Assembly: GCF_964194155.1 (NCBI RefSeq)
Contig: NC_135899.1
Span: 11,098,001-11,162,000 of the forward strand
Length of the DNA: 64,000 bases
DNA from: Cetorhinus maximus
Taxonomy: Eukaryota
Direction of reading: 5' to 3'
Shown here: one piece after another, positions 1 to 64,000 of the stretch
Layout: each line of letters starts with the position of its first letter
Position numbering within the stretch: position 1 is the first letter of the stretch
Translations under genes and position numbers: made by a program
Notes under the pieces: model-generated
What the model was told of the DNA's origin: nothing
Database searches by the model: none
The model's input: the letters and a program-made list of their open reading frames with translations, nothing else

Positions 1-171
1 GTCATGGGGAGTGGAGCATAGGACAAATGGAGACAAACTATGAGGAGGTGGAGTCTAAAAATTAGAGCTAAACCTTTCAGGAAACATTTCCACACACAAA
101 GAGTGGTAGAAGTTTGGAACTTCCTTCCGCAAACAACAAACACATCCAGGGATACCCCAAGGAATACTTAC

Positions 172-354
172 ACCCGGAGTCGCAGGTGGTTGTTGTCCCA
201 TTCCATCGGCCATTCTTCATACAGGTCCTGCTAACCGAGCCCTGGAGCTCATATCCATCGTAGCACTCGAACGTGACAGTTTCCCCAATGCTGTAGGAAA
301 TGTTCAGCGGACTGAACATCCCATCTTCCAGTACAGGAGGTGGGCATCGAAACA
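172..354 (-). CDS. CFB: Complement factor B/C2-family gene, exon 3 (CCP/sushi module 2); gene continues off the left edge
   Basis: AG acceptor at 356-355 and GTAAGT donor from 171; phase 1-1; encodes (V)FRCPPPVLEDGMFSPLNISYSIGETVTFECYDGYELQGSVSRTCMKNGRWNGTTTTCDSG, matching factor B/C2 CCP2 (CYDGY-L-GS--RTC--NGRW-G-T--CD-G). Factor B versus C2 is not resolved. Confidence 0.88.
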
Positions 355-956
355 CTAGTGAGATAGGAACAGCTTAGAAGGGCTGAGTGGCCTGGAATTG
401 GCTTCAGGGTTTGAAGGAGATAGGGGTGCAAACTTCAGGTACAAGCTAGCGTGACCCTGAGCCAAGGAGATCATAGAATCACATATGGTTACAGCACTGG
501 GTTCAAATCCCACCACGGCAACTGGAGGGATTTAAATTCAGTTAATTAAATAAATCTGGAATCGGAAAATCTCGGTGACCGTGAATCCACAAAAACCGAT
601 CTGGTTCACCAATGTCCTTCAGGGGAGGAAATCTGCCATCCTCACCCGGTCTGGCCTACATGTGACTCCAGGCCCACAGCAATGTGGTTGACTCCTAGCT
701 GCCCTCTGAGATCATGGGATCAGGGAATGGTTAGAGAGCAGCGCACAGAGGAAGTCATTCAGCCCATCGAGCCCGTGCTAGATTGCCTAGCAGATCACTC
801 ACTTGTACCCAATAATAGGATCTGTGATGGCAGCTGTGGTTCCAGGTGGGGTGCCACCACCTCAAGGGCAATTGAGGGGTGAGAGGGGTGGGTGGAACAA
901 ATGGCAGAGGAAGGAGACAGAGAGAGTGCGAAGGAAAGGAATTAACGGTGCCTCAC

Positions 957-1169
957 CTTTGCAAATGGGAGTGACACGTCTGTATACAGACCTGAACCAA
1001 TGTCCACTTTTCCAGCACCTTCCACTGGACACTGGGAACGGGTAATATGAATCAGGACACTCAAACCTCAAAACACTGTCCACAGCGTTACCATTCGATT
1101 TCTTCAACGTGCCACCAATAATGCGGACGTTGGGGTCACAGGTTATATGGTCTCCCTGTTCGTCATTTC
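957..1169 (-). CDS. CFB: Complement factor B/C2-family gene, exon 2 (CCP module 1)
   Basis: ttgcag acceptor and GTGAGG donor; phase 1-1; in frame with exons 1 and 3; (G)NDEQGDHITCDPNVRIIGG...FECPDSYYPFPVSSGRCWKSGHW...PICK has the 4-Cys/Trp CCP pattern. Confidence 0.85.
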
Positions 1170-1339
1170 CTGCAATGAGATTTATGAATGTAACTCCACA
1201 AAGGGGTGAGGGGTTAGGAAGGTGGGAAATGGGGTGAAAGAGGTTCTATCTTACAGCCCTACAGCACCTTGACCTCAAAATCACTCCGCAGAAGTAACTT
1301 CATTGGCTGATTGGTTCATGTCACTTCATGAAATGGTTA

Positions 1340-8643: not shown

Positions 8644-9975
8644 CTAAGGCACCACCAGGCTGATTTCAGCAGGCTTGTTCTCCATGTTGCGGGTGGTGGT
8701 CTTGCCGTGTTGGTCGCGCAGGTGGACCCGCAGGGTGCTGTAATGGGTGAAGCGCATGTCGCAGTAGCTGCAGCAGTGGGGCGAGTCGCCGTTGTGCACG
8801 TTCATGTGGTCCTTGAGCGAGCGCTTCTGCGTGAAGGTGCGGCCGCAGATGGCGCAGCAGTACGGCTTGAAGCCGGTGTGCACGTTGATGTGCTGGGCCA
8901 GCCGCGCGTTCTTCTTGAAGACCTTGCCGCACAGCAGGCACATGTAGAGCTTGTGGACCACCATGTGGGCTGCCAGGTGCTCGCGGTGCTCGAAGGGGGC
9001 GCCGCACTCGGAGCAGAGGCCTGGGCTCCGGGCCGCCTCGCCCTCCTTGGCACCCTGCCCTAAGCCAGAGAGGGGCGCGGGGGGCGGCGGGGGCTCCTCC
9101 CCCGGCCGGTAGAAGGTTCCAGTGAAGCCGCTGCTGCGGCAGTCCTCGCTGGCTGAGCTCTCGTAGTCCTCCTCCTGGAACTCATCCGAGATCATCACCT
9201 CTGACATGTCGTAGGGGGCGCTGCTGTCGGAGTAGCCACCCGCGCCACCCCCCACAGTCGAGTGGATGCCGGGGTCGGGATCCAGGCCGTTGGCGGGCTC
9301 CGCCCCGCCACCCGTCGGCCGCCCCTTGCCTGCCCGGCCTGGGCACCCCTCCATACAGTCGGCCAACGACTCCACCTTGTGGATGCAGATGTCCTCGGCG
9401 CCGCCAAAGTCCGCCCGCTGCTCCGACTCCAGCTTCACCACATCGTCCGCTGGCGTCCTCCTTGGGCCCTTCTCCTCTGCCATACCCGTCTCCCAAGACG
9501 CCAGCCTGTCGGCGTCAGGCGCGCGCTCCGAGGAGGTGGCGATCTGCGGCGTGCAGGGCCGCTCCTCGGCCCCCTCAGCCGGGGGCACACGGGGCCCGAT
9601 GCGCGGCGACAGCGACTGCCGGCACTTCTCCACCACATGCTCCATCTGGAGGCAGCTGGCCGCCGTCAGGTAGTCCAGGATGTCGTTGAAGGGGAACTCC
9701 AGCGTGCCGGTGTAGCAGGAGAGCAGGAGCCGCAGGACAATCTGGGCGCCCGTCATGGGGAAGACCTGCACCTCCTGCGAGGGGTTCATGTGGAACTGGT
9801 CGCGCAGGAAGGGCGAGCAGGCGGCCAGCACCACCCGGTGTCCCGGGAACCGCAGCTGATCTGCCACGATGGTCACATCACAGAAGCGCTCCTCCATCCT
9901 CAGCTGGTTCATCTTCTTCAGAATGGTCACCTCGTGGTTAGGGAACTGAAATCTCACCACATCGTCAGATGCCAT
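8644..9975 (-). CDS. ZBTB12: ZBTB12-like BTB/POZ plus 4 C2H2 zinc-finger protein, copy 1 (443 aa, single coding exon)
   Basis: [48 protein letters not shown] domain; four C2H2 fingers ending [13 protein letters not shown] as in ZBTB12; cttctccag acceptor at 9993-9992 just upstream of gccATGg; AATAAA at 8558-8553. Confidence 0.9.
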
Positions 9976-13150: not shown

Positions 13151-14914
13151 TTGGCCACAGGAACTCAGACTGCCTGAGTGAACTGTAACACACTACAGCC
13201 AAAGCGCCAACACCAGAACAATGGGATGAATGGCCTCTTCCTGTGCTGTTGGATTCTGTATATAGCCCCCGTGATGAGATAATAATCAAAAGAACTGGAA
13301 TATTGAGTTTAACAAACTTCTCATAAAACTGCACATGAAATACAGGTCTCTCTCTCTTTTTATATCCATGCACACAACTGGAGAATCACTTCCAGTCCTA
13401 CCCGATATCCGTATTGCAAGCTTCAGTTTCCGTACTGTCTCTATCTGCACCATTCTTCCCAGATTTGCTACGTTCCCTTCTCCCGTATCCCGGCTCCTTC
13501 CCCCATTCTCTGTGCTGGCATGGGCCCAATTCAAGCCAGTCTCATACCATCTGTGCGGCTCCCCAACACACCCACTGTCCCTAGTTGCCCTTGAGAAGGT
13601 AGTGGTGAGCTGCCTTCTTGAACCACTGCAGTCCATGTGGTGTGGGTACACCCACAGTATTAATTAGGGAGGGAGTTCCTGGATTTTGACCCAGCGGCAG
13701 TGAAGGAACAGCGATATGGTTCCAAGGCAGGATGGTGAGTGGCTTGGAGGGGGAACTTGCATTTAATTTATTTTTATTCGTTCATGGGGCGTGGGCATTG
13801 CTGGCCAGGCCAGCATTTAATGCCCATCCCAAATTGCCCTTGAGGTAGTGGTAGTGAGCTGCCACCTTGAACAGCTGCAGTCCCTGTGCTGTAGGTACAC
13901 CCACAGTGCCGTTAGGAAATGAGTTCCTGGATTTTGGCCCAGCGATAATGAAGGAACGGCAATATCGTTCCAAGTCAGGATTTTGAGTGCCTAAGCTCGC
14001 TAACCCGCACCTACCCCCCCCCCCAACCCCCCCACCCCACATACTCTATTAGTTCCAATGTATTTTCACAGCATTGCTGATCAATTTACCAAAAGCTTTA
14101 TCAAAGAGGTGGATTTTAAGTGTCTTCAAAGAGGAGAGTGAGATAGAGAAGCAGAGAGTCGAAGGGAAGGAATTCCAGAGCTCAGCACCTGGGGAAACTG
14201 TGTGGATGTACCTACACCACATGGACTGCCGCAGTTTAAGGAGGCAGCTTGCCACCACCTTCTCAAAGGATGGGCAACAAATGCTGGGTTTGCCAGCAAC
14301 ATCCATATGCCATGAAAGAACGAAAAGGCAGCTGAGGGCACAGCCACCAATGGTGGAGCAAATGTAAATCGGAGATGCACAAGAGGCCACAATTAGAGGA
14401 GTGCAGATATCTTGGAGGGTTTGGAGGAGATTAGAGAGAGAGGGAGGGTGAGACCAAGGAGCGGTTTGAAAACACGAATGAGAATTTTTACAATCAACAC
14501 ATTTCTTGACCGGGAACCAGGGCTGGCCAGTGAGCACAGGGTGATGGGGGAACGGGACTTGCTACGAGTTCGGACACGGGCTGCATTCGAAGATTTGAGG
14601 TGACCGGTCAGCAGAAGCCGAGAGGTGGGTCCCCTTCCCTTCCCTTGCCCTGGGCAACAGAGTGGCTCTACCAACATAGGGTCAGGCAACCCGATCACTT
14701 GCCCAATAACACAAAGGGTCAAACCGCAAGCTCACTCCGGACAGGGAGAATCTCACCCGTGGGTGTAACCTCAACATCCTCCATCACCCCATCTCCCACC
14801 CAGAGGAAGGGGGTGCAAGTGTACATGGCAGCTCAATGGGCCCACCCAGAGCTCATGAAGGGGGCGAGACGGTATGAAATATTTTGGAGGTTAAGTTTTT
14901 TGAGGGGTTTACGG

Positions 14915-16010
14915 TTGAGGATTGGGGGCTTGGGGTTGAGGATTGGGGGGGGGGGGTTTGGGGTTGAGGATTTGGGGGGGGGTTTGGGGTTGAGGATTGG
15001 GGGGTTTGGGGTTGAGGATTGTGGGGTTTGGGGTTGAGGATTGGGGGGGTTTGGGGTTGAGGATTGGGGGGTTTGGGGTGGAGGATTGGGGGGGTTGGGG
15101 TTGAGGATTGGGGGGTTTGGGGTTGAGGATTGGGGGGTTTGGGGTTGAGGATTGGGGGGGTTTGGGGTTGAGGATTGGGGGGGTTTGGGGTTGAGGATTG
15201 GGGGGGTTTGGGGTTGAGGATTGGGGGGGTTTGGGGTTGAGAATTGGGGGGTTTGGGGTTGAGGATTGGGGGGTTTGGGGTTGAGGATTGGGGGGGTTTG
15301 GGGTTGAGGATTGGGGGGGTTTGGGGTTGAGGATTGGGGGGGTTTGGGGTTGAGGATTGGGGGGGTTTGGGGTTGAGGATTGGGGGGGTTTGGGGTTGAG
15401 GATTGGGGGGGTTTGGGGTTGAGAATTGGGGGGTTTGGGGTTGAGGATTGGGGGGGTTTGGGGTTGAGGATTGGGGGGGTTTGGGGTTGAGGATTGGGGG
15501 GGTTTGGGGTTGAGGATTGGGGGGGGTTTGGGGTTGAGGATTGGGGGGGGGTTTGGGGTTGAGGATTGGGGGGGTTGGGGTTGAGGATTGGGGGGGTAGG
15601 GGTTGAGGATTGGGGGGGGTTTGGGGTTGAAGATTGGGGGGTTTGGGGTTGAGGATTGGGGGGGGTTTGGGGTTGAGGATTGGGGAGTTTGGGGTTGAGG
15701 ATTGGGGGGGTTTGGGGTGAGGATTGGGGGGGTTTGGGGTGAGGATTGGGGGGGTTTGGGGTGAGGATTGGGGGGGTTTGGGGTGAGGATTGGGGGGGTT
15801 TGGGGTTGAGGATTGGGGAGTTTGGGGTTGAGGATTGGGGGGGTTTGGGGTGAGGATTGGGGAGTTTGGGGTTGAGGATTGGGGGGGTTTGGGGTGAGGA
15901 TTGGGGGGGTTTGGGGTGAGGATTGGGGGGGTTTGGGGTGAGGATTGGGGGTGTTTTGGGGTGAGGATTGGGGGGGTTTGGGGTGAGGATTGGGGGGGTT
16001 GGGATGGGGT
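14915..16010 (+). repeat. G-rich minisatellite, ~22-23 bp unit (GGGGGGGTTTGGGGTTGAGGATT), roughly 45-50 copies
   Basis: Directly visible tandem array in the predicted intron 1 of ZBTB copy 1, followed by a 12-bp GCTGGGTGTCTG repeat at ~16120-16220. Confidence 0.95.
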
Positions 16011-16439
16011 TTTTGGGGCAGTTTGAAGGGTTAATTTAGGGTTGGGGGTTAGGGTTTTTCTTGAGGGGGTTTGGGGCTCAGGATTTTGGGGGTTAGGATG
16101 AGGGTCGGGGATTTGGGGAGTGTCTGGCTGGGTGGGTGTCTGGGTAGGTGTCTGTCTGGCTGGGTGTCTGGCTGGGTGTCTGGGTAGGTGTCTGGCTGGC
16201 TGGGTGTCTGGTCGGTCTGGTCTCTCCCCTCCCGGATCCGTAGCGGCCCCTCCGGCCTCTTCCCCGTCCGCCGGGGCGAACCTCCGACTCGAGCTCCGGG
16301 GCTGCGGCCTAGGCTGGTGCGGGCGGCGGGGTTTCCCGGCCGCAGAGTGGGGGGCGGGGGGGATGGTGTTGGGTGAAGGAGGTGAAGCCCCGGGTCTCCC
16401 TCCCGGTCTTTTCCCCAGCCCCTCACCCCCGGGACTCAC

Positions 16440-16560
16440 CCGGCTCCCGGGCTCCGAGTTGCCGCAGTTCTCGGCGGGTGGCCGACCGAAACCCCGGGCC
16501 CCCAAACTCCCGGCGACAGAGGGGGAGGGCCGACCAGCCGCAGCCCCGGAGTTTCCACCG
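16440..16560 (-). other. ZBTB12: Putative non-coding first exon and CpG island of ZBTB12-like copy 1
   Basis: CpG-rich; G|GTGAGT donor at 16439; sequence is paralogous to 27740-27875. Confidence 0.65.
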
Positions 16561-17039
16561 ACTGGCACTGGATCTTTCTGTCACTGACTGGAGCATTCGA
16601 TCTTTTGTCACTGGATCTCACTGTCACTTGATCTCCATGTCACTAGAATCCTCTGGCAGTCGATCTACTGTCGCTGGCACTCGATCTCTCTAGCACTCTT
16701 TCTCCAGCTCTCTCTGCCACATTCTCTCTACATGGGTAGCTCTGGCATTCGGCCACAGGATCTCTTTGTCACTGCATCTCTGTCACTGGAACCCTTTGGC
16801 ATTCAATCTGCTGGCAGTGAAGATCTCTGTCACTTGATCTGTCACTCAGTCTCTCTGGCACTGGATCACTTGCTACTTCTCTCTGCTACTTTATCACTGG
16901 GTGGCCATGGAATTTGGCGACAGTGGCACTGGATCTCTCTGGCACTCCATCTCTCTAACATTCAATCCCTTTATGTTGCATTGGCACTGGATGTATCCAT
17001 CAGTGGATGTCTTTATCATTTTACAACTAGGTGACTCTG

Positions 17040-37390: not shown

Positions 37391-37959
37391 GTGCACATAG
37401 ATTAATTCGCACCCACTGTAACAAGCACCTTCAGGAGAGCTTCTAAAGTATTCTCCCCTACTTTTAAGGGCAAAACTCATAGCACTGTTGCCCTGAGTCT
37501 GCAGGTTGAGTACCACACAAATCTAGGCTGACACGTCCGCGGCAGCACTGAGGGAGCGCCAAACAGTCAGAGGCATCGTCTCTCGGATCAGATGTTAAAC
37601 TGAAGCACCCCCTCCCCCACCCCCACCCCGTCTGCTTTCCCAGTTGGACTGTTTGGAAGAAGAGCAGGGGAGTTCTCCCCAGTGTCCAGAACTAAACATA
37701 TAACTGTCAGTCAACATTGCTAAAAATCAGCAGATAATCCAGACGTTGTCACGCTGCTTTTCTTGCATTGTTTTTTTAAGAATTATTTCATTGGCTGTAA
37801 AGCTCTTTGGGATGTTCTGAGGTTGTGAAGGGAGAGGTAGAAATGAAAGCCTTTCTCCATCTTTCCACTTCCTCCGCATAAGAAACACACGGCCCTTTCT
37901 GGAAGAGGAACTAGCTTGAGAAAAGGCCGCAGACCGAGGAGGACTCCGACCCTGGTCCA

Positions 37960-38250
37960 CAGGGTGAGGGAGACCCCAGCACCAGTCCGCAGAGTCAGAG
38001 AGACCACGACGCCAGTCTGCAGAGCGAGGGAGACCCCAACAGCAGTCCTCAGAGCGAGGGAGACCCCAATACCAATCCATAGAGCAAGGGAGACCAGTCC
38101 GCAGAGCATGGGAGACCCCAACACCAGTCCGCGGAGCGAGCGCGACCCCAATACCAATCCAGAGTGAGGGAGGCCAGTCCACAGAGCGAGGAAGACCAGT
38201 CTGCAGCGCGAGGCAGACCCTGGTGGCAATCCACAGAGCAAGGGACTCCT
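37960..38250. repeat. Degenerate ~20-30 bp tandem repeat immediately 3' of the ZBTB copy 3 stop codon
   Basis: Repeated gcagagcgagggagaccccaacaccagtcc-like units. Confidence 0.75.
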
Positions 38251-39390
38251 CTACAATAGCCCAGTGTCCGCAGCAGCCATGGTTAGCTGGGCTAACTTAC
38301 AGTTGTCGGCTGTGGTCTTGCCATGTTGCTCTTTGAGGTGCCTGCGGAGGGCAGGTTTGTGGGCGAAGCTCATGTTGCAGTAGTGGCAGTGGTGAGGCCT
38401 GGCGCCGCTGTGAAGGTTCATGTGATCCTTCAGCGAGCGGTTCTGGGTGAACGTCTTGCCGCAGACGGTGCAGAGGTAAGGCTTGATGCCTGTATGCACG
38501 TGGACGTGCCTGGCCAGGTTGACCCGCTGGCTAAACACCTTGCCACACCTGGGGCACATGAAGAGCTTATGGGCCTTCATGTGGGCCACCAGATGCTCCG
38601 GGTGCTGGAAGGCCTCTGCACACTCGCTGCAGTGAATGGGCTGGGGGCAGGGGGCAGCTGGGGTTCCCTGAGGGCTGGGGAGAGCCCGGGGCCTGACGGA
38701 GCAGGCGGCCCCGCACTCCTCACTGGCCGAGCTGTCCTCGTCCTCGGGGAAGCCGCCGCCGATCAGAACGCAGCCCTCCTCATCATCGGTCGCCTCGGAG
38801 AAATCGGGGCAGGCCGGTTGCCGGGACACGCTTGGCCGGCTTCCAGAAGGTTCTGCCACCGGGCTGTCCGCATCGATGATTACATAAAGGTCATCGGCCT
38901 CTTCGTTCTCCTCAGACTCCGACTTGATCTCGGCCTCCTCCTGGGCCTGGGACTCAATTTGGGCCTGCGCCTCCGGACCGCAGCCATCATCCTTGATCTT
39001 GATGCGGGGGTCGATATACCTGGACAGTGCCCGCCTGCACTCCTCCACCACGTGGTCCATCTGCAGGTAGCTGGCCGTCGTCAGGTAGTTCACCACCTCC
39101 TTGAAGGGGAAGTCCAGTGCCCCGGTGTAGCACGAGAGCAGCAGGCGGGAGAGCATCTCCGCCCCCTCGCTCAGCGCCACCCGTACCTCCTTGGACGGGT
39201 TGAGGAGGAACTGGTCGCGCAGGAAGGGGGAGCAGGCTGCCAGCACCACCCGGTGCCCGGGGAACCTCAGCTGCTCCGTCACGATGGTCACGTCGCAGAA
39301 ACGCTTCTCCAGGCGCAGCTGGTTCATCTTCTTCAAGGTCGTTGACTCATGATGAAGAAACTGGAACTGAAGAACCTCTCCTGACGCCAT
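38251..39390 (-). CDS. ZBTB12: ZBTB12-like BTB plus 4 C2H2 protein, copy 3 (379 aa)
   Basis: MASGEVLQFQF..FLRDQFLLNPS..SCYTGAL; fingers with FMCPRCGK, NLHSGARP and FAHKPALRRHLKEQHGKTTA.N closely match human ZBTB12; tttaaacag acceptor at 39403-39402. Confidence 0.92.
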   Translation of the reverse strand: MASGEVLQFQFLHHESTTLKKMNQLRLEKRFCDVTIVTEQLRFPGHRVVLAACSPFLRDQFLLNPSKEVRVALSEGAEMLSRLLLSCYTGALDFPFKEVVNYLTTASYLQMDHVVEECRRALSRYIDPRIKIKDDGCGPEAQAQIESQAQEEAEIKSESEENEEADDLYVIIDADSPVAEPSGSRPSVSRQPACPDFSEATDDEEGCVLIGGGFPEDEDSSASEECGAACSVRPRALPSPQGTPAAPCPQPIHCSECAEAFQHPEHLVAHMKAHKLFMCPRCGKVFSQRVNLARHVHVHTGIKPYLCTVCGKTFTQNRSLKDHMNLHSGARPHHCHYCNMSFAHKPALRRHLKEQHGKTTADNCKLAQLTMAAADTGLL

Positions 39391-48071: not shown

Positions 48072-48092
48072 ATGGCTTCCCTGGATGCTGAG
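48072..48092 (+). CDS. EHMT2: EHMT2/G9a exon 1 (MASLDAE)
   Basis: ATG plus 21 coding nt then GAG|GTGAGA; resembles the N-termini of EHMT1 (MAAADAE) and EHMT2 (MAAA..AAE); phase 0. Confidence 0.78.
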
Positions 48093-53825: not shown

Positions 53826-53910
53826 GGGGAGGCTAACAGCACGGTGCAGGCCACAGCAGAACCAGAACTCCTGGTGCTGGATAGGAGCCCCAGCAGTGAA
53901 GTAAATCAAG
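53826..53910 (+). CDS. EHMT2: EHMT2 exon 2
   Basis: tttatctag acceptor and G|GTAAGA donor; phase 0-1; GEANSTVQATAEPELLVLDRSPSSEVNQ resembles human GEAPAEMGALLLEKE; joins exons 1 and 3 in frame. Confidence 0.75.
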
Positions 53911-54309
53911 GTAAGATAAGATTACCCATTCAAAATGGCTGTTGTTCTGTTAGCAAACTGGCAGCCATTTTGTATACAGCACGGTCCCTCAAACGGCAGT
54001 GAGAGGAAAGGCACGGTGATCTGCTTTGTCGGTGGAGGGTGGGTTGTTGGCCAGTACAGCAAGGGCAGAGCTCTCTGAACAGTGCCCTGGGAACTTCTGT
54101 CAGATACTGAGCCAGGTCAAAAGGCAGACAGGTGGCAGGTGAGGTTCAACATGGGTAAGTGCAAATCCAGTGAGTTTGGACAGGAGAGGTGAGAATCTGC
54201 ATGAAGTGGCCATGTGCCTGATGTAAGGATAGAGAGCTGGGGATGGTTCAAAATGCTGGTGTGGTTTTGGCAGGCAGTGGCTGTGCCTTTTAAGCCGAAG
54301 GATTAAGTG

Positions 54310-55370: not shown

Positions 55371-57705
55371 AGTTCAGGGGCCTGGGAAGCTGAGTCTAGG
55401 AGAGTGAGTTATGAGGAAGGTAGTCTCTCTCTGGGGAAGAGGAGGATGAGGGTAGGGGGAAATGGTGGGGGTGGGAGAGTGGATAGAGACTGCAGAGGTA
55501 CATAGGTGTTGGATGCAGATGAGTTCTTGTCCTGGACAGGTATTGGGGATTGTGAACCACAGTTTAAAGTTCTAAGCTCTGCAGTCCTGCCACATCTAGT
55601 CGTGGATGGTGGTGGACAATTAAACAATTCACTGGAGGAGGAGGCTCCACAAATATCCCCATCCTCAAAGATGGAGGAGTCCAGTACATCAGTGCAAAAG
55701 ATAAGGCTGAAGCATTTGGAAAAATCTTCAGCTAGAATTGCTGAGCAGATGATCCATCTCTGCCTCCTCCTGACATTCCCAGCATCACAGATGCGGGTCT
55801 TCAGCCAATTTGATTCATTCCACGTGATATCAAGAAACAGCTGAAGGCACCGTACACTGCAAAGGCTGTGGGCCCTGACAATATTCTGGCAGTAGTACGG
55901 AAGACTTGTGCATCAGAACTAGCCACGTCCCTAGCCAAGCTGTTCCAGTACAGCTACAACACTGGCATCTACCCGGCAATATGGTAAGTTGCCCAGGTAT
56001 GTCCCATCCACAAAAAGCAGGACAAATCCAATCTGACCAATTATCACCTCTTCAGTCTACTCTCAATCAGCAGCAAAGTGATGCAAGGGGTCGTCGACAG
56101 TGCTATCAAGTAGCACTTACTGAACAATAGCCTGCTCACTGACGCTCAGTTTGGGCTCCGCCAGGGTCACTCTGCCCCTGACCTCATTACAGCCTTGGTT
56201 CAAATGTGGACAAAAGAGCTGAACTCGTGAGGTGAGAGTGACTGCCCTTGATATCAAGGCAGCAAGTGACCACGTGTGGCATCAAGGAGCCCTAGCAAAA
56301 CTGAAGTCAATGGGAATTCGGGGGAAACTCTCCACTGGTTGGTGTCATATCTAGCACAAAGGAAGATGGTTGTGGTGTTGGAGGTCAGTCACCTCAGTTC
56401 CAGGACATCACTGCAGGAGTTCATCAGGATAGTGTCCTCAGCTCAACCATCTTCAGCTGCTTCATCAATGATGATCGCATAGTATTCAGCAGCATTTGTG
56501 ACTCCTCAGATACTGAAGCAGTCCGGGTCTGTATGCAAGACCTGGAAAAGAGCTAGGAAGTGACCATATCCAACAAGAGAGAACCTAACCACCTCCCCTT
56601 AGTGTTCAGTGTTCTTACTGTTTCACTTTGCTATTGTGCAGTGGTTGCGTAAGTGGTATTTTCCGCTAACAGGATGCTTTCAGGAACCCTATTTTTGTAA
56701 TCTCCTCCAGTTCTATAATCCATCAAGATCTTGGCACTCCTTCAGACCTGGTGCCTTGAGTAACCCCGATTATAATTGCTGCACCAGTGGTGATCAGCTG
56801 CCCGGGCCCTAAATTCTGGAATGTCCTCACGAGACCGCTCTGTCTCACTTTCACCCTTACATTCCTTTAACCTGACCAAACCTTTGGTTATCTGACCTAG
56901 TATCTCCTTATGTGGCTCGGTGTCATATCTTGCTTTATAAGCTCCTTTGGGCATTTCACTGCTTTAAAGCTGCCATATAAATGCAAGTTGTTGTTATAAA
57001 GCTGTCAAGCTGGGCTCTCCCCCTTCTGTCATGGAGAGAGAGAGAGAGTAAAAGGGAAATAGAGAGCGTGAATAAACAGAGGGGTCGTACTGCTGAGGGG
57101 TTATAACGATTGGGATGGATTGAACAGGGTTGGGACCTTTTTCTTTAGAAAAGAGAGAAGACTGAGGGATGACCTGATAGAGGTCTTTAAAATCATGAAA
57201 GGATTCAATAGAGTAGACATAGGTGAGATGTTTTACTTGTCGGGGAAGACCGGAACACGGGGCCACGAATATAAGATAGTCTCTAATAAATCCAATCGGG
57301 AATTCAGGAGAAATCTCCTTACCCAGAGAGTGGCGAGAACATGGGGCTCGCTACCACAGGAAGTGGTTGAAGCGAACACAATAGATACATTTAAAGGGAA
57401 GCTGGATAAACACATGAGGGAGAAAGGAATAGAAGGATATGTTGATGGGAGGAGATGAAGTAGGGGTGGGAGGTGGCTTGTGTGGAGTTTAAATGGCAGC
57501 ATGGACCAGTTGGGTTGAATGGCTTTTTCTGAGCTGTGAATACGTTTGTAATGGAGGGTGTGTTTATTTGCTCATCTCTGCCTTCGTGCATCGGGACGTA
57601 GATCCTGCTGCTCAACAGCTCTTTATACCTTGCTCGAATGTGTGGTGAGAGAATGACAGTGCAATGCATCCCGGGAATTGAACGCGGTATGGCTTTATTT
57701 TGCAG

Positions 57706-57933
57706 AGCTCGGCGAAGAGGCAGAACCGCCCCCCAAGAAACTGGGGCAGTTGTCGAACCCCACGGCGGGCACCGGAAGTGCGATGGGAAACATCGCTTCG
57801 CAGAATAACAAGGAGGCGCCGTGCTCCGGGGCCGGCCAAGAGATCGCGGCGAAGGCCCCCGACCCCGAAACCACAGCGGCTACGGGCACCCGAGGGGAAG
57901 AGCCGGCAAGCAGCGAGGCGCAGTGTAAACCTG
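57706..57933 (+). CDS. EHMT2: EHMT2 exon 3
   Basis: ttttgcag acceptor and G|GTGAGC donor; phase 1-1; CpG-rich open frame ELGEEAEPPPKK...AQCKP joins the flanking exons in frame. Confidence 0.75.
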
Positions 57934-59038
57934 GTGAGCCCTACCTGGGCTTGGAGTGCCCGTCCTCTGACACTGTGGCTGTCAGTCGGCCGGGGTCTCA
58001 ACCCGGAGCTCTCCCTGCCAAGGGCTTGTCAGGTAACTATTCCCTGGAGTTTACATCTACCTCAGCTGCAAGCATGTTGTCCGACGGATGTTTTGGGAGG
58101 GCGAGTGGGAGGGGTCTTGGCGGAGTAAATAGGGACCAACTAGTGGGATGATGGGCAGCTGGAGACTGCCGATTCAATTGGCAGAGGAACTGGACAGGAG
58201 GTGAGGGGCCATGTTCTTTCATGCAGCAGGATGATGTGGTTTGGAACAGCCTGCACCCTCCATTTCTGCCCTCTTGTGCATCCCCGATTTTATTTGTTCC
58301 ACCAGTGGTGGCCACGCTTTCAGCAACCTGGCCCTTCAAGCTCGGGAATTGCTCCCCTAAACCTCTCCTCCTATTTCTATCCTATTTTGAGATTCTTCCC
58401 CTTTGACCAAACTATTATCTCCTTGTGTGGCTCAGTGTCAGACTTTAATGCATTGGACGTTGTAATGCATTGAAGGCGCTATACAAATGCAAGTTGTTGT
58501 TGTTAGGCTAGTGGAAGTAGATTCAATAGTAGCTTTGAAAAGAGGATTGGATGAACACTGGGCAAGGCAAAATAAAATTGTTGGGTGGACAGGCAGCAGC
58601 TGTCCCCCTTAGCTGAAGGGTCAGTCACGAGGGGACATAAGTTCAAGGTGAGGGGCAGGAGGTTTAGGGGGGATGTGAGGAAAAATGTTTTTGCCCAGAG
58701 GGTGGTGACGGTCTGGAATATCCTGCCTGGGAGGGTGGTGGAGGCTGGTTGCCTCACATCCTTTAAAAAATACCTGGATGAGCGCTTGGCACGTCATAAC
58801 ATTCAAGGCGATGGGCCAAGTGTTGGTAAATGGGATTAGGTAGGTAGGTCAGGTGTTTCTCACGTGCCCGTGCAGACTCGATGGGCTGTAGGGCCTCTTC
58901 CGCACCGTGTGATTCTGTGATAACGGGAAAGAGTAGGAGAGAGAGGGACAAATGGGGTAGCTCTCTCAAAGAACCAGCACAGTATGAAAGGCCGCCTCCT
59001 GCCCTCTTCTAATTTGCTTTGATGTTTTTCTTCCTTAG

Positions 59039-59298
59039 GCCATGCTGCCAAAACATTCCCTGCCTCCCCCACCAAGGCCCCAGGGGCCAACAGGGCTAAG
59101 ATGACACTAACCGGGCTCAACAAGTCTCCGAACTCCATTCAGAGCCTAGCCATGAAACTGCTGAGTGTGCCGACCGGACGGGCAGGGAACGAGGTGGCAG
59201 CAGTCCCAGTGGAGGCGCAGAGACTGATCCCAGTTCAGGATGAGAAGCCCAAGATCCACAAAGCACGGAAGTCGATATCCAGATCCAGCGCCAGTCAG
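59039..59298 (+). CDS. EHMT2: EHMT2 exon 4, containing histone-mimic copy 1 (IHKARKS)
   Basis: GHAAKTFPASPTKAPGANRAKMTLTGLNKSPNSIQSLAMKLLSVP...KPKIHKARKSISRSSASQ aligns to human GHATKSFPSSPSK..RAKMSMTGAGKSPPSVQSLAMRLLSMP...QPKVHRARKTMSKPGNGQ; canonical AG/GT; phase 1-0. Confidence 0.92.
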
Positions 59299-60115
59299 GT
59301 ACCAAAGGGGGTGGCCCCGCTTGCGCGTTGCGCTTGCACGGAGGGCATGCTTTCCCGCCGCCTGATGGCCGGGCGTGCACTTACATCACGACTGCGACTG
59401 CTCTGTCTTGGCTGGGCTGTGAGGAGGAGGGATAGCGGGCTGAGGAGACGTCGCCTGCCTTGCAGCGTGGATCAAGCTCTAGAGTCGGACTTAAACCTTA
59501 TGCCTCAGAGGCGAGAGTGCTAGCCACTGAGCCACAGCTGACACTGAGCGTGAGATTTAGACTGACTTTCGCAGTGTAGTACTGAGGAGGTGCTGCACTG
59601 TCGGAGGTGCTGTCTGTCAGATGAGACGTTAAATTGAGGCCCCATCTCTCCGCTCGGGTCCATGTAAAAAAATTCTATGACACTATTTTGAGGAAGAGCA
59701 GGGGAGCTCTCTCCAGTTTCCTGGCTAACATTTATCCCTCAATCAACATCACAAAAACATTATCTGGTCATTATCACAAGGTTATTTGTGGGAGCTTGCT
59801 GTGAATATTTTAGCTGCTGCATTTCGTCCGTTACAACAGTGACATAGTATTCAAAAAGTATTGGTTGTAAATGACTTGCTGAGGTGGTAAAAGATCCCCC
59901 ATAACAGCCTGGACGATGCCAGGGAAACACGGGATCTGTATGACGAGGGGAGGATGTGGATGGGAAAATGTGAACTGATTTTTCTCCCACTAAATTTTTG
60001 TGTTTTTAATTCGGCAGACATTCGGTTAAAGTCCGCCTTGCTTTAAAAGTATTGCATTTCCCAGACACTCCCCCCCCACCCTAAAAAAATCCTGCTGTTT
60101 GTAACTTTTACACAG

Positions 60116-60268
60116 AGATTGCCTACAGAACTGGGGACCTTGCCCACCGAACGGACAAGCCAGACCCCTGGGGCGACAGCAGAGGCTGAGCACGCAGTCC
60201 CGGGTCAGGACGAGAATCAGGAGGTGCACAGAGCGAGGAAGTCGATACTGAAAGGCAGCTTCAGTCAG
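60116..60268 (+). CDS. EHMT2: EHMT2 repeat exon, mimic copy 2 (51 aa)
   Basis: acacag|...CAG|GTACGG; phase 0-0; RLPTELGTLPTERTSQTPGATAEAEHAVPGQDENQEVHRARKSILKGSFSQ. Confidence 0.85.
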
Positions 60269-61755
60269 GTACGGTGAACAGTACCCCCGCCCCCTCAGAC
60301 TGGCCAGTGAGCCACAGTAAATAAGGGGAAGCTGACTGCGTACTGTCTGTTGGTTAAAAAAATGTACCTCCCACCCAAAAACCTGTTCTGAATTCCCGCC
60401 CCAGCTGTTGCCTGTCAGCTGCCCCGCGCTTCAGGTGAGTTTTTACATTGCTCTGGGTTTGGACGCAGGACAAGTAATCCTGCTGTCACCGTCCCATCAG
60501 TACACTCTTGCTCCCTCCCTCCTCTCCCCGCCACCTCCCAGGCATTCCTTCGCGTCAGGCACCGATCAGATGCAGAGTGTGTGAGATGCATGGCCTACGA
60601 GGGGTTAAGACTCCAGTCCTACCTTTAGGAGGCGATTCAGCCCCATTTTTATATTGACTGTGTGGCATTTGTTTGGGGACGGAGAGACAGAGGTGCGGGA
60701 TTAGAGGAGCAGGGAACAACTTCCAGGTCACCCTGAGCACGTCAGTGGCAAGTTAGGGGTGAGCAAACATGCCAGGTGCTCATCGAGCACCTTTCCCTGT
60801 GTTTGTTGCTGCCATTTGTGGGTAACATGGAGAGGAGTATAGGTCCCCGAGCTGCCAGGATGGATGAGCAGCAGTCCTGCGGTGGGGCTAGCTTGTCCCC
60901 TTCTTAAAAACTCACTTTCAATCCAGGTGTAAGTGCAGGTTATCTTGGCAGATTACTTCATTATATGGTTGTTCACAGCTCCAACCATGACCCAGTGGAT
61001 AGCTCACTCTCCATGTGTGTCACAAGTCCCACTTCCCAGTGCAAAGGGAATGCTGCACTGTCAGAGATGCCGCCTGTCAGATGAAACGTCAAACCGAGGG
61101 CCCCGTCTGCCCTCTCAGGTGGCCATGAAAGGTCCACTATTTGAAAAAAGAGCAAGGGAATTTTCCCTGCTGTCCTGGGCCAATATTTATCCCTTAACCA
61201 ACATCACTAAAGCAGATGACCTGGTCATTATCTCATTACTGTTTGTGGGAGTTTGCTGTGCGCAAATTGGCTGCCACGTTTCCTACATTACAACAGTCAC
61301 TACATTTCAAAAAGTACTTCATTGGCTGTAAAGCCATTTGGGACCCCCTGAGGCTGTGAAAGGCACTATGTAAATGCAAATTCTTTTATATAAATATAAT
61401 ACCAACTGTCTTTTCACTAACAATGCTCTTTTTAACTTCGGCCAGGTGCTTGAATAAAACTGTACATTTGACTAATAAATCTGCTTCTTATTTTTTAGAA
61501 AGCTGGGTTTTGTTATAGCTGGTGTGATTACAACACTTAACAGCTTTTTGTGAGTCGGTGAGGTTACATTTCATAGCTGTACTTTTTGGGTGGCTTAGTG
61601 CGGTGAGACGGGGGCATGTATAATATTTTGCACAGGCACAAACAATCCCGTGAGTGGCGAGTCTACCGTTGCTTGCATCAAAGTATTCCACCTCCCTGCA
61701 TCCGATTGTGTGTTTTTTATCTCGTTTGTGACTAATTATGCCTAACTTCACACAG

Positions 61756-61911
61756 AGCTTGGCAGAGAAGTTGGCAAGCTTGCCCATTGGACGGGCAGTT
61801 GGTGAACCTCCTGGGGGAATGACAGAGCCAGAGCACGCAGTCCAGGCTCAGGACGAGAACCAGGATATTCATCGAGCCAGAAAGTCAATCCTCAAAGGCA
61901 GCTTCAGCCAG
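61756..61911 (+). CDS. EHMT2: EHMT2 repeat exon, mimic copy 3 (52 aa)
   Basis: acacag|...CAG|GTGAAG; phase 0-0; SLAEKLASLPIGRAVGEPPGGMTEPEHAVQAQDENQDIHRARKSILKGSFSQ. Confidence 0.85.
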
Positions 61912-61979
61912 GTGAAGAGAGAAGACCGGATTTTGCAGACTGGTGGACGAGTCAGAGAAATGTTAAAACCTAGGGAACC

Positions 61980-62740
61980 TCGCTCTGCCCCGCCCCCTCC
62001 TCGCTCTGCCCCGCCCCTCCTCGCTCTGCCCCCCCTCCTCGCTCTGCCCCCCCCCTCGCGATGCGCTTTCCCCCTCCTCGCTCTGCCCCGCCCCCTCCTC
62101 GCTCTGCCCCGCCCCCTCCTCGCTCTGCCCCGCCCCCTCCTCGCTCTGCCCCGCCCCCTCCTCGCTCTGCCCCGCCCCCTCCTCGCTCTGCCCCGCCCCC
62201 TCCTCGCTCTGCCCCGCCCCCTCCTCGCTCTGCCCCGCCCCCTCCTCGCTCTGCCCGCCCCCTCCTCGCTCTGCCCCGCCCCCTCCTCGCTCTGCCCCGC
62301 CCCCTCCTCGCTCTGCCCGCCCCCTCCTCGCTCTGCCCGCGCCCTCCTCGCTCTGCCCTCCCCCTCCTCGCTCTGCCCTCCCCCTCCTCACTCTGCCCTC
62401 CCCCTCCTCGCTCTGCCCCGCCCCCTCCTCGCTCTGCCCCGCCCCCTCCTCGCTCTGCCCCGCCCCCTCCTCGCTCTGCCCCGCCCCCTCCTCCCTCTGC
62501 CCCGCCCCCTCCTCCCTCTGCCCCGCCCCCTCCTCGCTCTGCCCCGCCCCCTCCTCGCTCTGCCCTCCCCGTCCTCGCTCTGCCCGCCCCCTCCTCGCTC
62601 TGCCCGCCCCCTCCTCGCTCTGCCCCACCCCTCCTCGCTCTGCCCCGCCCCTCCTCGCTCTGCCCCGCCCCTCCTCGCTCTGCCCGCTCCCTCCTCGCTC
62701 TGCCCGCCCCCTCCTCGCTCTGCCCGCCCCCCCCTCGCTC
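61980..62740 (+). repeat. 21-bp C-rich minisatellite (CCCCCTCCTCGCTCTGCCCCG), ~36 copies
   Basis: Directly visible; fills most of the intron between mimic copies 3 and 4. Confidence 0.95.
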
Positions 62741-62850
62741 ACCCCCATGCTTTTATCGTCTTCCTCCTCCTTTTCCACCCTCCCCTTAGCCATTGTCATC
62801 CTCACACCCATTACCCCCTTGACCTTCTGTTCTGATTGGCTTCCACACAG

Positions 62851-62997
62851 GGTACGGCAAAGAGGATGGCAAGCATGCCGACTGCTCGGGCAGTCGCTGA
62901 GGTTGCCGCGGAGACGGAGGTTATGGTCCCAGACCTGGACGAGTACCCAGAGATCCACAGAGCGAGAAAATCCTTTCTCTCAACAAGCATTAGCCAG
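62851..62997 (+). CDS. EHMT2: EHMT2 repeat exon, mimic copy 4 (49 aa)
   Basis: acacag|...CAG|GTATGC; phase 0-0; GTAKRMASMPTARAVAEVAAETEVMVPDLDEYPEIHRARKSFLSTSISQ. Confidence 0.85.
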
Positions 62998-63301
62998 GTA
63001 TGCCGGGTGGTGGTGTCTGTTTATTGTGCAGTGATGTGAAAACAGCCTGGCTTCAAAAAGTCAATTAGGAGTTTTTATTTTATAGGAGTTTGGGTAAATT
63101 GCATGGCATTCCTTGAAGCACAAGCACCTGGCAGCACCTCATTTCAGAATGAACATTGGGGCAGGAATGAACACTTTGAGTGCTCCTTTAAGTTTTTTTT
63201 TTAACACAAGTCTAATACTTAAGAAAAGTTAATAGCAAAAGGTGTTAATTCATTCCTCACAACTGTCCCTTTTTATTCTCCACGATGTGCAATGAATTCA
63301 G

Positions 63302-63457
63302 AGTTTGACCAGGAGCCTTCCAAGCGAGATCGTTGGCCAGGGCGGGAGCGAGGTGTCGATGATGACAGCAGAGAGACAGGATGCTCCCCAGGACCAGGTG
63401 GAGAAAGTGAAAGTCCACAGAGCCAGGAAGTCCATGTTTAAACCCAGCCCTGCTCAG
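63302..63457 (+). CDS. EHMT2: EHMT2 repeat exon, mimic copy 5 (52 aa); gene continues off the right edge
   Basis: attcag|...CAG|GTACGT; phase 0-0; SLTRSLPSEIVGQGGSEVSMMTAERQDAPQDQVEKVKVHRARKSMFKPSPAQ. Confidence 0.85.
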
Positions 63458-64000
63458 GTACGTCGTAGTGTGTGCACCCACTGCAGCTCAGCTCAGCTCT
63501 GGACTGGGGGGAGCGTTGCTGAAACACCAGACTCCATAGGTTGGAAACTGCAACACTTGTTGATGTGATCAAAACACGCTTGGGCTTGACACTAGGTTAA
63601 GCACTTGATGTGCGAAAGCGTCGCGAGCACCTAAATGTCACTACACCGCAGGGAGCGATGAATGTGCCTTATCCCACAGTCTTGTGTTCTTTTGGGTTCT
63701 GTATGTAACATGCATGCTGTACAGCTCTCCACACAATAGGACTCAAACAGACAAACCAAACCTGGAATCAGGGCAACATTTAGGCAGTTTTCATATCTCC
63801 ACACAATCAGTTATATAATTTACTAGGTTTTTGAAATTCTGAGCCCCCCCCCAGGGGTCCATCCAGTGAACACATGGGAAATTTCCCAACCCCGCACATC
63901 ATCTGCATTCAGAGAGAATGTTGCAGCCTTGCTTCTCCAACCTCCGCCCTCCCTTCAGAGTGTTGGCTATGGAATGGAAGGGCGGTGATTGGGGGGGGGG

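Follow-up and report, generated by a model that had tools for sequence, protein, structure and literature searches.

Five tandem H3K9-like ARKS modules in the N-terminal region of EHMT2 (G9a) of the basking shark and other elasmobranchs

How many copies of a histone-like substrate site can a histone methyltransferase carry within its own sequence, and what would an enzyme with several of them be able to do? The question is raised by a stretch of 64,000 nt from the basking shark Cetorhinus maximus (contig NC_135899.1, positions 11,098,001 to 11,162,000 of the forward strand, hereafter the window), which contains the first coding exons of the gene for EHMT2 (G9a), a methyltransferase of histone H3 lysine 9 (H3K9), with a run of five related segments that each encode the H3-like motif ARKS. 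To our knowledge the histone mimic of G9a, the textbook example of a writer that marks itself and recruits readers, is a single site in all species that have been studied. A first-pass annotation made from the letters of the window had proposed that the mimic is present at least five times here, and for the mammalian enzyme it had relied on biology with which passages of PMC2175347 and PMC8541646 agree; in those of the latter, G9a methylates itself at K185, the methylated site is a ligand of HP1 and CDYL, and Aurora B phosphorylates T186, antagonising the binding of readers.

The five repeat units, labelled U1 to U5 in 5' to 3' order, are homologous and free of stops on direct translation, with lengths of 156, 153, 156, 147 and 156 nt and with CAG before and GT after each of them. 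U1 (59143-59298) is the 3' portion of a longer exon (59039-59298), and the other four are separate symmetrical exons, as had been proposed, all of them in phase 0 and with a length divisible by 3. Every unit encodes [IV]H[KR]ARKS followed by a hydrophobic residue and ends in Gln, with the Lys of the motif 9 residues before that Gln in all five, again as first described. The coding exons of the window are given below against the RefSeq protein XP_078422690.1 (P0024, Cetorhinus maximus EHMT2-like isoform X2).

48072-48092, + strand: coding exon 1 (probably the first), with an ATG at 48072 that opens MASLDAE, the first 7 residues of the protein, and the donor gtgag
53826-53910, + strand: coding exon 2, residues 8-35 and the first base of codon 36 (tblastn 100% over 28 aa), AG upstream and GT at 53911, the boundary being taken from the printed sequence context
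57706-58032, + strand: coding exon 3, residues 36-144 and the first base of codon 145, exact, AG at 57704-57705 and GT at 58033
59039-59298, + strand: coding exon 4, the conserved G9a N-terminal segment (GHAAKTFP...) and then U1 (IHKARKSI)
60116-60268, + strand: U2 exon (VHRARKSI), 153 nt, phase 0, exact at residues 232-282
61756-61911, + strand: U3 exon (IHRARKSI), 156 nt, phase 0, exact at residues 283-334
62851-62997, + strand: U4 exon (IHRARKSF), 147 nt, phase 0, AG/GT borders, exact at residues 335-383, with an ortholog in 19 of 19 species
63302-63457, + strand: U5 exon (VHRARKSM), 156 nt, phase 0, AG/GT borders, exact at residues 384-435, with an ortholog in 19 of 19 species

In exon 4 it is the translation of 59041-59298 that equals residues 146-231 of this protein exactly, and the five unit-bearing exons together are exact and contiguous over residues 146-435. 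The motif lysines of the model are K222, K273, K325, K374 and K426, with the spacing of 51, 52, 49 and 52 residues that had been predicted; the absolute numbers that went with the prediction (K189, K240, K292, K341 and K393) differ from these, numbering being isoform-dependent. The count is likewise narrower than the "at least five" of the first-pass annotation, as the protein models hold exactly five units and none beyond them, and when all 64 kb were scanned in six frames only four further ARK[ST] sites appeared, none of which is within a homologous unit. A candidate sixth motif, HRARKT at 38186 (+), was rejected as a chance occurrence since it is in a simple tandem repeat, has a stop seven codons upstream and is without homology to the units. 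The repeat in question, of ~33 nt, runs over ~37950-38260 (+), with one frame encoding HRARKT by chance, and is adjoined by a C2H2 zinc-finger-like open frame at ~38300-38600 (-).

In an alignment of the units over 52 columns U2-U5 are 39-49% identical to U1, and the columns that are invariant across all five are E24, E34, H39, A41, R42, K43, S44, S49 and Q52. The codons of H-x-A-R-K-S vary among the units (H CAC/CAT; A GCA/GCG/GCC; R CGG/AGG/AGA; K AAG/AAA; S TCG/TCA/TCC), which agrees with the first description of a motif that is kept with different synonymous codons. The tail of U5, KSMFKPSPAQ, is the closest among the units to the single copy of bony vertebrates. A Pfam scan of the single exons gave no domain, as expected for a disordered segment, and an AlphaFold2 model of an N-terminal fragment from the sevengill shark Heptranchias perlo (P0001, 24 aligned sequences) has a mean predicted local distance difference test score (pLDDT) of 43 and a single helix at residues 180-188; the repeat-bearing N-terminal region is thus predicted to be disordered.

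The identification of the gene as EHMT2 (G9a) had been part of the first-pass annotation and is upheld by the exact match to XP_078422690.1. The ankyrin and SET domains that this identification implies downstream are present in that protein by Pfam (EHMT1-2_CRR 1e-33, Ank_2 2.7e-45, Pre-SET 2.5e-16, SET 6.6e-29); they were read in the RefSeq protein, the exons for the Cys-rich, ankyrin, Pre-SET and SET domains being beyond base 64000. A profile search, in which the units were entered as five separate rows against 1.84 billion representative proteins (50% clustering), matched six proteins, four with five or six matched stretches and two with one. The four are RefSeq shark and ray proteins, mostly named EHMT2 or EHMT2-like, and the two are mouse-like G9a N-terminal fragments (P0005 and P0006) that were matched at the HRARKT segment with E ~4e-4. 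Furthermore, the exon-4 region matches the EHMT2 of Latimeria at 3e-18, and for the region after the units the best non-elasmobranch matches listed are EHMT2 proteins (Geotrypetes, Latimeria and Microcaecilia) with 69-72% identity over 96-100% of the query; these shark species also have EHMT1 proteins among the same matches, which are separate proteins, score lower and cover 54-75% of that region. Judged by these matches the gene is EHMT2/G9a, an ortholog of EHMT2 rather than of EHMT1, and the window holds eight 5' coding exons of it.

How widely the five units are shared was assessed in 79 EHMT2 proteins (isoforms) from 19 elasmobranch species, made up of 12 sharks and 7 rays or skates. Five H[KR]ARKS motifs are present in 78 of the 79, the remaining one being a whale-shark isoform model with four, because one of the U2/U3 pair is absent from it; with one representative per species, all 95 of 95 motifs are intact. 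The comparison set of 109 proteins, drawn from the matches listed, contains the EHMT2 of coelacanth, lungfish, bichir, sturgeon, bowfin, amphibians, reptiles, birds and mammals, together with the EHMT1 of birds, crocodilians, sharks and rays. Exactly one HRARKT is found in 105 of these 109 and ARKS in none, the other 4 being N-terminally truncated and without a motif, which is in keeping with the single HRARKT segment that had been assumed for the G9a of bony vertebrates. Shark and ray EHMT1 with an intact N-terminus also has a single HRARKT, which confines the expansion to the EHMT2 paralog. Among the proteins examined, the sequences place both the fivefold expansion and the change from Thr to Ser in elasmobranch EHMT2 specifically. 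In the representative search multi-stretch matches were likewise found in elasmobranchs only, at 50% clustering. Teleosts were not among the matches listed in the protein comparison, nor was a holocephalan EHMT2 (852-2712 aa), and the 50% clustering could hide a chimaera protein in the representative search.

Some of the five-unit proteins are recorded under other names. The Heptranchias perlo five-unit N-terminal fragment goes under the name "nucleolar and coiled-body phosphoprotein 1-like". In Rhinoraja longicauda two neighbouring loci on one contig, LOC144602501 (P0003) and LOC144602500 (P0008), each code for an EHMT2 N-terminus that is truncated and has five units, and both products are called "uncharacterized protein". 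The Rhinoraja longicauda loci and the name of the Heptranchias perlo fragment are likely to be annotation or assembly problems.

Evidence that the units are joined in RNA comes from reads of a close relative of the basking shark placed on 59000-61975, that is from exon 4 to U3, in two small runs that were guessed by a tool to be RNA (X1 and X2) and one DNA-like run (X7). Record 1 of X1 is a contig over 59037-59295, 60113-60265 and 61753-61912 in which the three pieces occupy consecutive record positions with no intron letters between them, and the 3-nt offset of the pieces from the exon borders arises because exons and introns both end in CAG. Record 10 of X2 joins U2 to U3 in a contig that runs 3754 nt further, and record 7 of X2 covers exon 4 as well. 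Depth in X1 and X2 is 28-135 over exon bins versus 0-9 in unique intron bins, and in X7 all 30 bins are covered, collinearly with the introns. Against the window the contigs of the relative have exons without gaps and with 5-6 substitutions each; of the 17 counted, 15 could be classified from those listed, 8 as synonymous and 7 as nonsynonymous, with 0 in the motif. In these RNA-like contigs of a relative exon 4 (with U1), U2 and U3 are spliced together exactly at the predicted sites, as would be expected of transcripts that run across the units, and U1-U3 is the extent of the coverage.

When the five units arose can be approached through a tree built from 85 units (17 species) and 13 single units, over 52 columns and with many forks open; Stegostoma and Leucoraja, both of which have five motifs, were left out of the unit alignment and the tree as the anchor string is absent from them. 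U1, U2, U4 and U5 are each one side of a branch, with Shimodaira-Hasegawa-like approximate likelihood ratio test (SH-aLRT) values of 82-95, and U3 comes out as paraphyletic with respect to U2; a single group holds U2-U5 (SH-aLRT 90), with U1 beside the single unit of bony vertebrates. The units cluster by position and not by species and the five copies therefore predate the split between sharks and rays, which took place above 250 million years ago. On this tree the five unit positions are orthologous across sharks and rays, without homogenisation. Between sharks and rays identity is 0.88 in the 8-residue windows of the motif, as against 0.49 for what remains of the units and 0.78 for the stretch of exon ahead of U1, in accordance with the first-pass annotation, which had seen the motif kept whilst the remainder of each unit diverged. 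Across the 19 species the spacing from Lys to Lys is 38-52 residues, and ARKS is followed by I in U1, U2 and U3 and by M in U5 in 19 of 19; U4 has F, I or L at this position in 12 of the 19.

The borders of the duplicated segment can also be followed. The sequences of the two mouse-like fragments, P0005 and P0006, part exactly upstream of GHATK and downstream of NGQ, at the same borders as shark exon 4, and this suggests from sequence comparison that the ancestral exon had the same borders and that the end of every unit, Gln followed by GT, was inherited. ATTCAG/AG is common to U1 and U5, and the new acceptors may perhaps have been derived from the ancestral coding ATT-CAG before SLAM. The intron flanks of the units have random identity beyond an acceptor consensus of ~12 nt, and residual homology between the introns, which has decayed, was set aside as a clue to the age or origin of the duplication. 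The only match between introns, that of intron 4 and intron 5 (72% over 292 nt), was considered as a trace of the duplication and rejected, as it is a SINE-like (short interspersed element) repeat. What we would envisage is that in the shark-ray ancestor the exon segment for the automethylation site of G9a, composed of a short helix-prone SLAxKLxSxP, an acidic linker and H-R-A-R-K-[S/T]-hydrophobic, was duplicated four times to give four symmetrical exons of 147-156 nt, the outcome of which is five ARKS sites ~50 residues apart in a tail of the enzyme that is predicted to be disordered.

The introns between the units have features of their own. The SINE-like repeats lie at ~59500-59850, in the intron after exon 4, and at ~61000-61400, in the intron after U2, and in all four runs they attract read depths that start in the thousands and reach hundreds of thousands. 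Most of the U3-U4 intron is occupied by a 21-bp minisatellite at 61978-62740, with ~37 copies, 93% matches and the unit CCTCGCTCTGCCCCGCCCCCT, and a + frame is open from U3 across this minisatellite to 62832.

As to what the five units do, shark EHMT2 is probably an enzyme with five individually switchable, automethylated sites at which readers dock. In passages of PMC8541646 the substrate preference of G9a is given as hydrophobic-R-K-hydrophilic-hydrophobic, and in passages of PMC2175347 an H3 ARKS peptide and G9a ARKT peptides have similar methylation kinetics. A-R-K-S, which fits the published rule, is present in 95 of 95 units, with the U4 of rays as an exception at +2, and a Ser follows the motif Lys in all five units. 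It is the fit to this rule together with the predicted disorder that makes a five-site switchable docking tail the most likely function. Each ARKS lysine would be methylated by the SET domain of G9a/GLP in the manner of human K185, each methyl-lysine would dock a reader, be it a chromodomain of the HP1, CDYL or MPP8 type or the ankyrin repeats of G9a/GLP, and phosphorylation of the adjacent serine would release it, so that there would be up to five switchable docking sites instead of one, the valency of which could be tuned by skipping in-frame unit exons. A more far-reaching version is possible, if on balance doubtful, in which several lysines are methylated at once and bind several HP1 dimers, CDYL/MPP8 or the ANK repeats of neighbouring G9a/GLP, giving a multivalent, mitotically switchable "mini-chromatin" scaffold, perhaps condensate-forming, that would have had a valency of five before the shark-ray split and could be trimmed by exon skipping.

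A number of points weigh against a tail of five working sites. The junction evidence spans U1-U3, with U4 and U5 known from gene models and open frames; the RNA nature of X1 and X2 is the guess of a tool and their source is a relative and not the basking shark; their splice joints were seen in the table of contig pieces and are not among the 15 joints listed; and the RefSeq models of EHMT2 are automatic predictions. The reach of the transcripts and the predicted status of the models would also be what one expects if U2-U5 were outside the mature mRNA, as pseudo-exons or as artefacts of annotation or assembly, yet contigs from two RNA-like runs link U2 and U3 to exon 4 without any gap in the exons, the open frames have AG/GT borders and five units are found in models from 19 independently assembled species, and such an origin is extremely unlikely. 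At the level of the protein, the residue after ARKS in U4 is H or G in 7 of the 19 species, all of them rays, and by the published preference these units may be poorer substrates of G9a; the ratio of nonsynonymous to synonymous substitution rates (dN/dS) between paralogs is only moderately low over whole units (0.17-0.63); and methylation, reader binding and phosphorylation of the shark units are carried over from mammalian G9a. It could be that there is a single working methyl switch, in U1 or U5 with their ancestral flanks, and that the other units are tolerated filler in a disordered linker. The grouping of U1 with the single bony-vertebrate unit, the mammal-like tail of U5, the identity of only 49% between sharks and rays outside the motif and the one whale-shark isoform model that is without a unit would all fit with this. 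Filler, however, is not expected to keep H-x-A-R-K-S in each copy since before the shark-ray split, and with 95 of 95 motifs intact, every unit position kept as an ortholog group and motif windows at 88% against 49% elsewhere it seems quite improbable that one unit does all the work.

Alternatively the ARKS units could be real and conserved but act in cis, either as pseudo-substrates or buffers of the SET domain or as ligands of the ANK repeats that drive self-association or autoinhibition. Passages of PMC8541646 describe the binding of mono-/dimethyl-lysine in the H3K9 context by the ANK repeats of G9a/GLP, PMC7700585 describes an autoregulatory automethylation in the H3K9 methyltransferase Clr4, and a tail that is predicted to be disordered could reach the C-terminal domains; on the other hand, PMC2175347 reports that catalysis by mouse G9a in vitro was neither hampered nor stimulated by automethylation. 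The present sequence data do not separate binding in cis from binding in trans, and action in cis would seem unlikely. The motif might also be mainly a repeated site for a kinase or a phospho-reader, or a basic targeting signal, with lysine methylation secondary. All five copies in the elasmobranch EHMT2 proteins examined have Ser where every EHMT1 examined, and every EHMT2 from bony vertebrates, has Thr, which suggests selection on the phospho-acceptor. Kinases of the Aurora type favour substrates that are basic at -2 and hydrophobic at +1, to which R-K-S-[I/F/M] conforms. However, what marks a G9a substrate and chromodomain ligand is the unvarying Ala-Arg-Lys together with a His four residues ahead of the Lys, features that a kinase site alone would not need, and we consider it highly improbable that phosphorylation or targeting is the main role.

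No description of a shark G9a/EHMT2 or of a multi-copy G9a mimic was found in the literature searched, where co-mentions were off-topic (EHMT2 with elasmobranch in work on ricefish, and G9a with shark in a review of LINE-1 (long interspersed element 1)). The first-pass annotation, which knew of no earlier report, is right to that extent, although RefSeq already has public automatic models of the five-unit proteins. The sites form a natural series of valencies, from one in EHMT1 and in the G9a of bony vertebrates through the four of a single isoform model to the five of elasmobranch G9a. Such a series makes it testable how multivalent self-marking relates to reader stoichiometry, chromatin residence and phase behaviour, and whether the change from Thr to Ser is tied to kinase control; if the multivalent scaffold is true, it would offer a natural experiment in which to see how histone-mimic valency tunes the spreading of heterochromatin. 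The five units also flag problems in annotation, one fragment being carried as a nucleolar phosphoprotein and two as uncharacterized.

Beyond EHMT2 the window contains an intact single-exon gene at 8647-9975 (-) for a BTB/POZ and C2H2 zinc-finger protein of 443 aa, the exact product of which is in the protein collection and clusters with proteins of other sharks that are named ZBTB12-like or ZBTB26-like. At the start of the window there are open frames with Sushi/CCP domains at 80-373 (-) and 865-1245 (-), with a Pfam value of 1.3e-12 for the first. A ZBTB12-like gene and Sushi-domain exons beside EHMT2 match what we take to be the human EHMT2 neighbourhood, and we presume that the Sushi/CCP exons belong to a gene like those for complement C2/factor B, which would fit a neighbourhood similar to class III of the major histocompatibility complex (MHC). 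A long stop-free proline-rich repeat (PPNPQPQTPPILNPK...) is found at 14836-16580 (-), where the GC skew is strong (0.61 in 14001-16000).

Finally, the shark units can be set beside the systems that are known. The mammalian site (human K185/T186, mouse K239; HRARKT) is the nearest of these, being in the same gene, in the same exon and with the same H-R-A-R-K core, and likewise in a disordered N-terminal tail. Whilst mammalian G9a has one copy with Thr after the Lys, elasmobranch EHMT2 has five, four of which are separate in-frame exons, with Ser in every one. The paralogous enzyme GLP/EHMT1 has the same HRARKT in a single copy in every EHMT1 examined with an N-terminus, and the ARKT site of GLP/EHMT1 (as "EuHMT") is methylated by G9a in vitro in passages of PMC2175347. 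SETDB1, as described in bioRxiv 10.1101/2025.10.22.683908, is the closest precedent for multiple H3K9-like automethylation motifs in a writer; two such motifs are required there to bind SUV39H1, CDYL and HP1gamma. SETDB1 and shark EHMT2 are alike as H3K9 methyltransferases with more than one H3K9-like motif; the two lysines of SETDB1, however, are described as a few residues apart in the catalytic domain, whereas shark EHMT2 has five modules ~50 residues apart in a tail predicted to be disordered, and the sequence of SETDB1 is unrelated to the shark units. The core of the H3 tail itself, A7-R8-K9-S10, is identical to the ARKS of the sharks and a neighbouring methyl/phospho pair would be expected in both, but in H3 the motif is near the N-terminus and follows Q-T, whereas in sharks it is internal, follows H-R (H-K in U1 of the window) and is carried by the writer enzyme itself.

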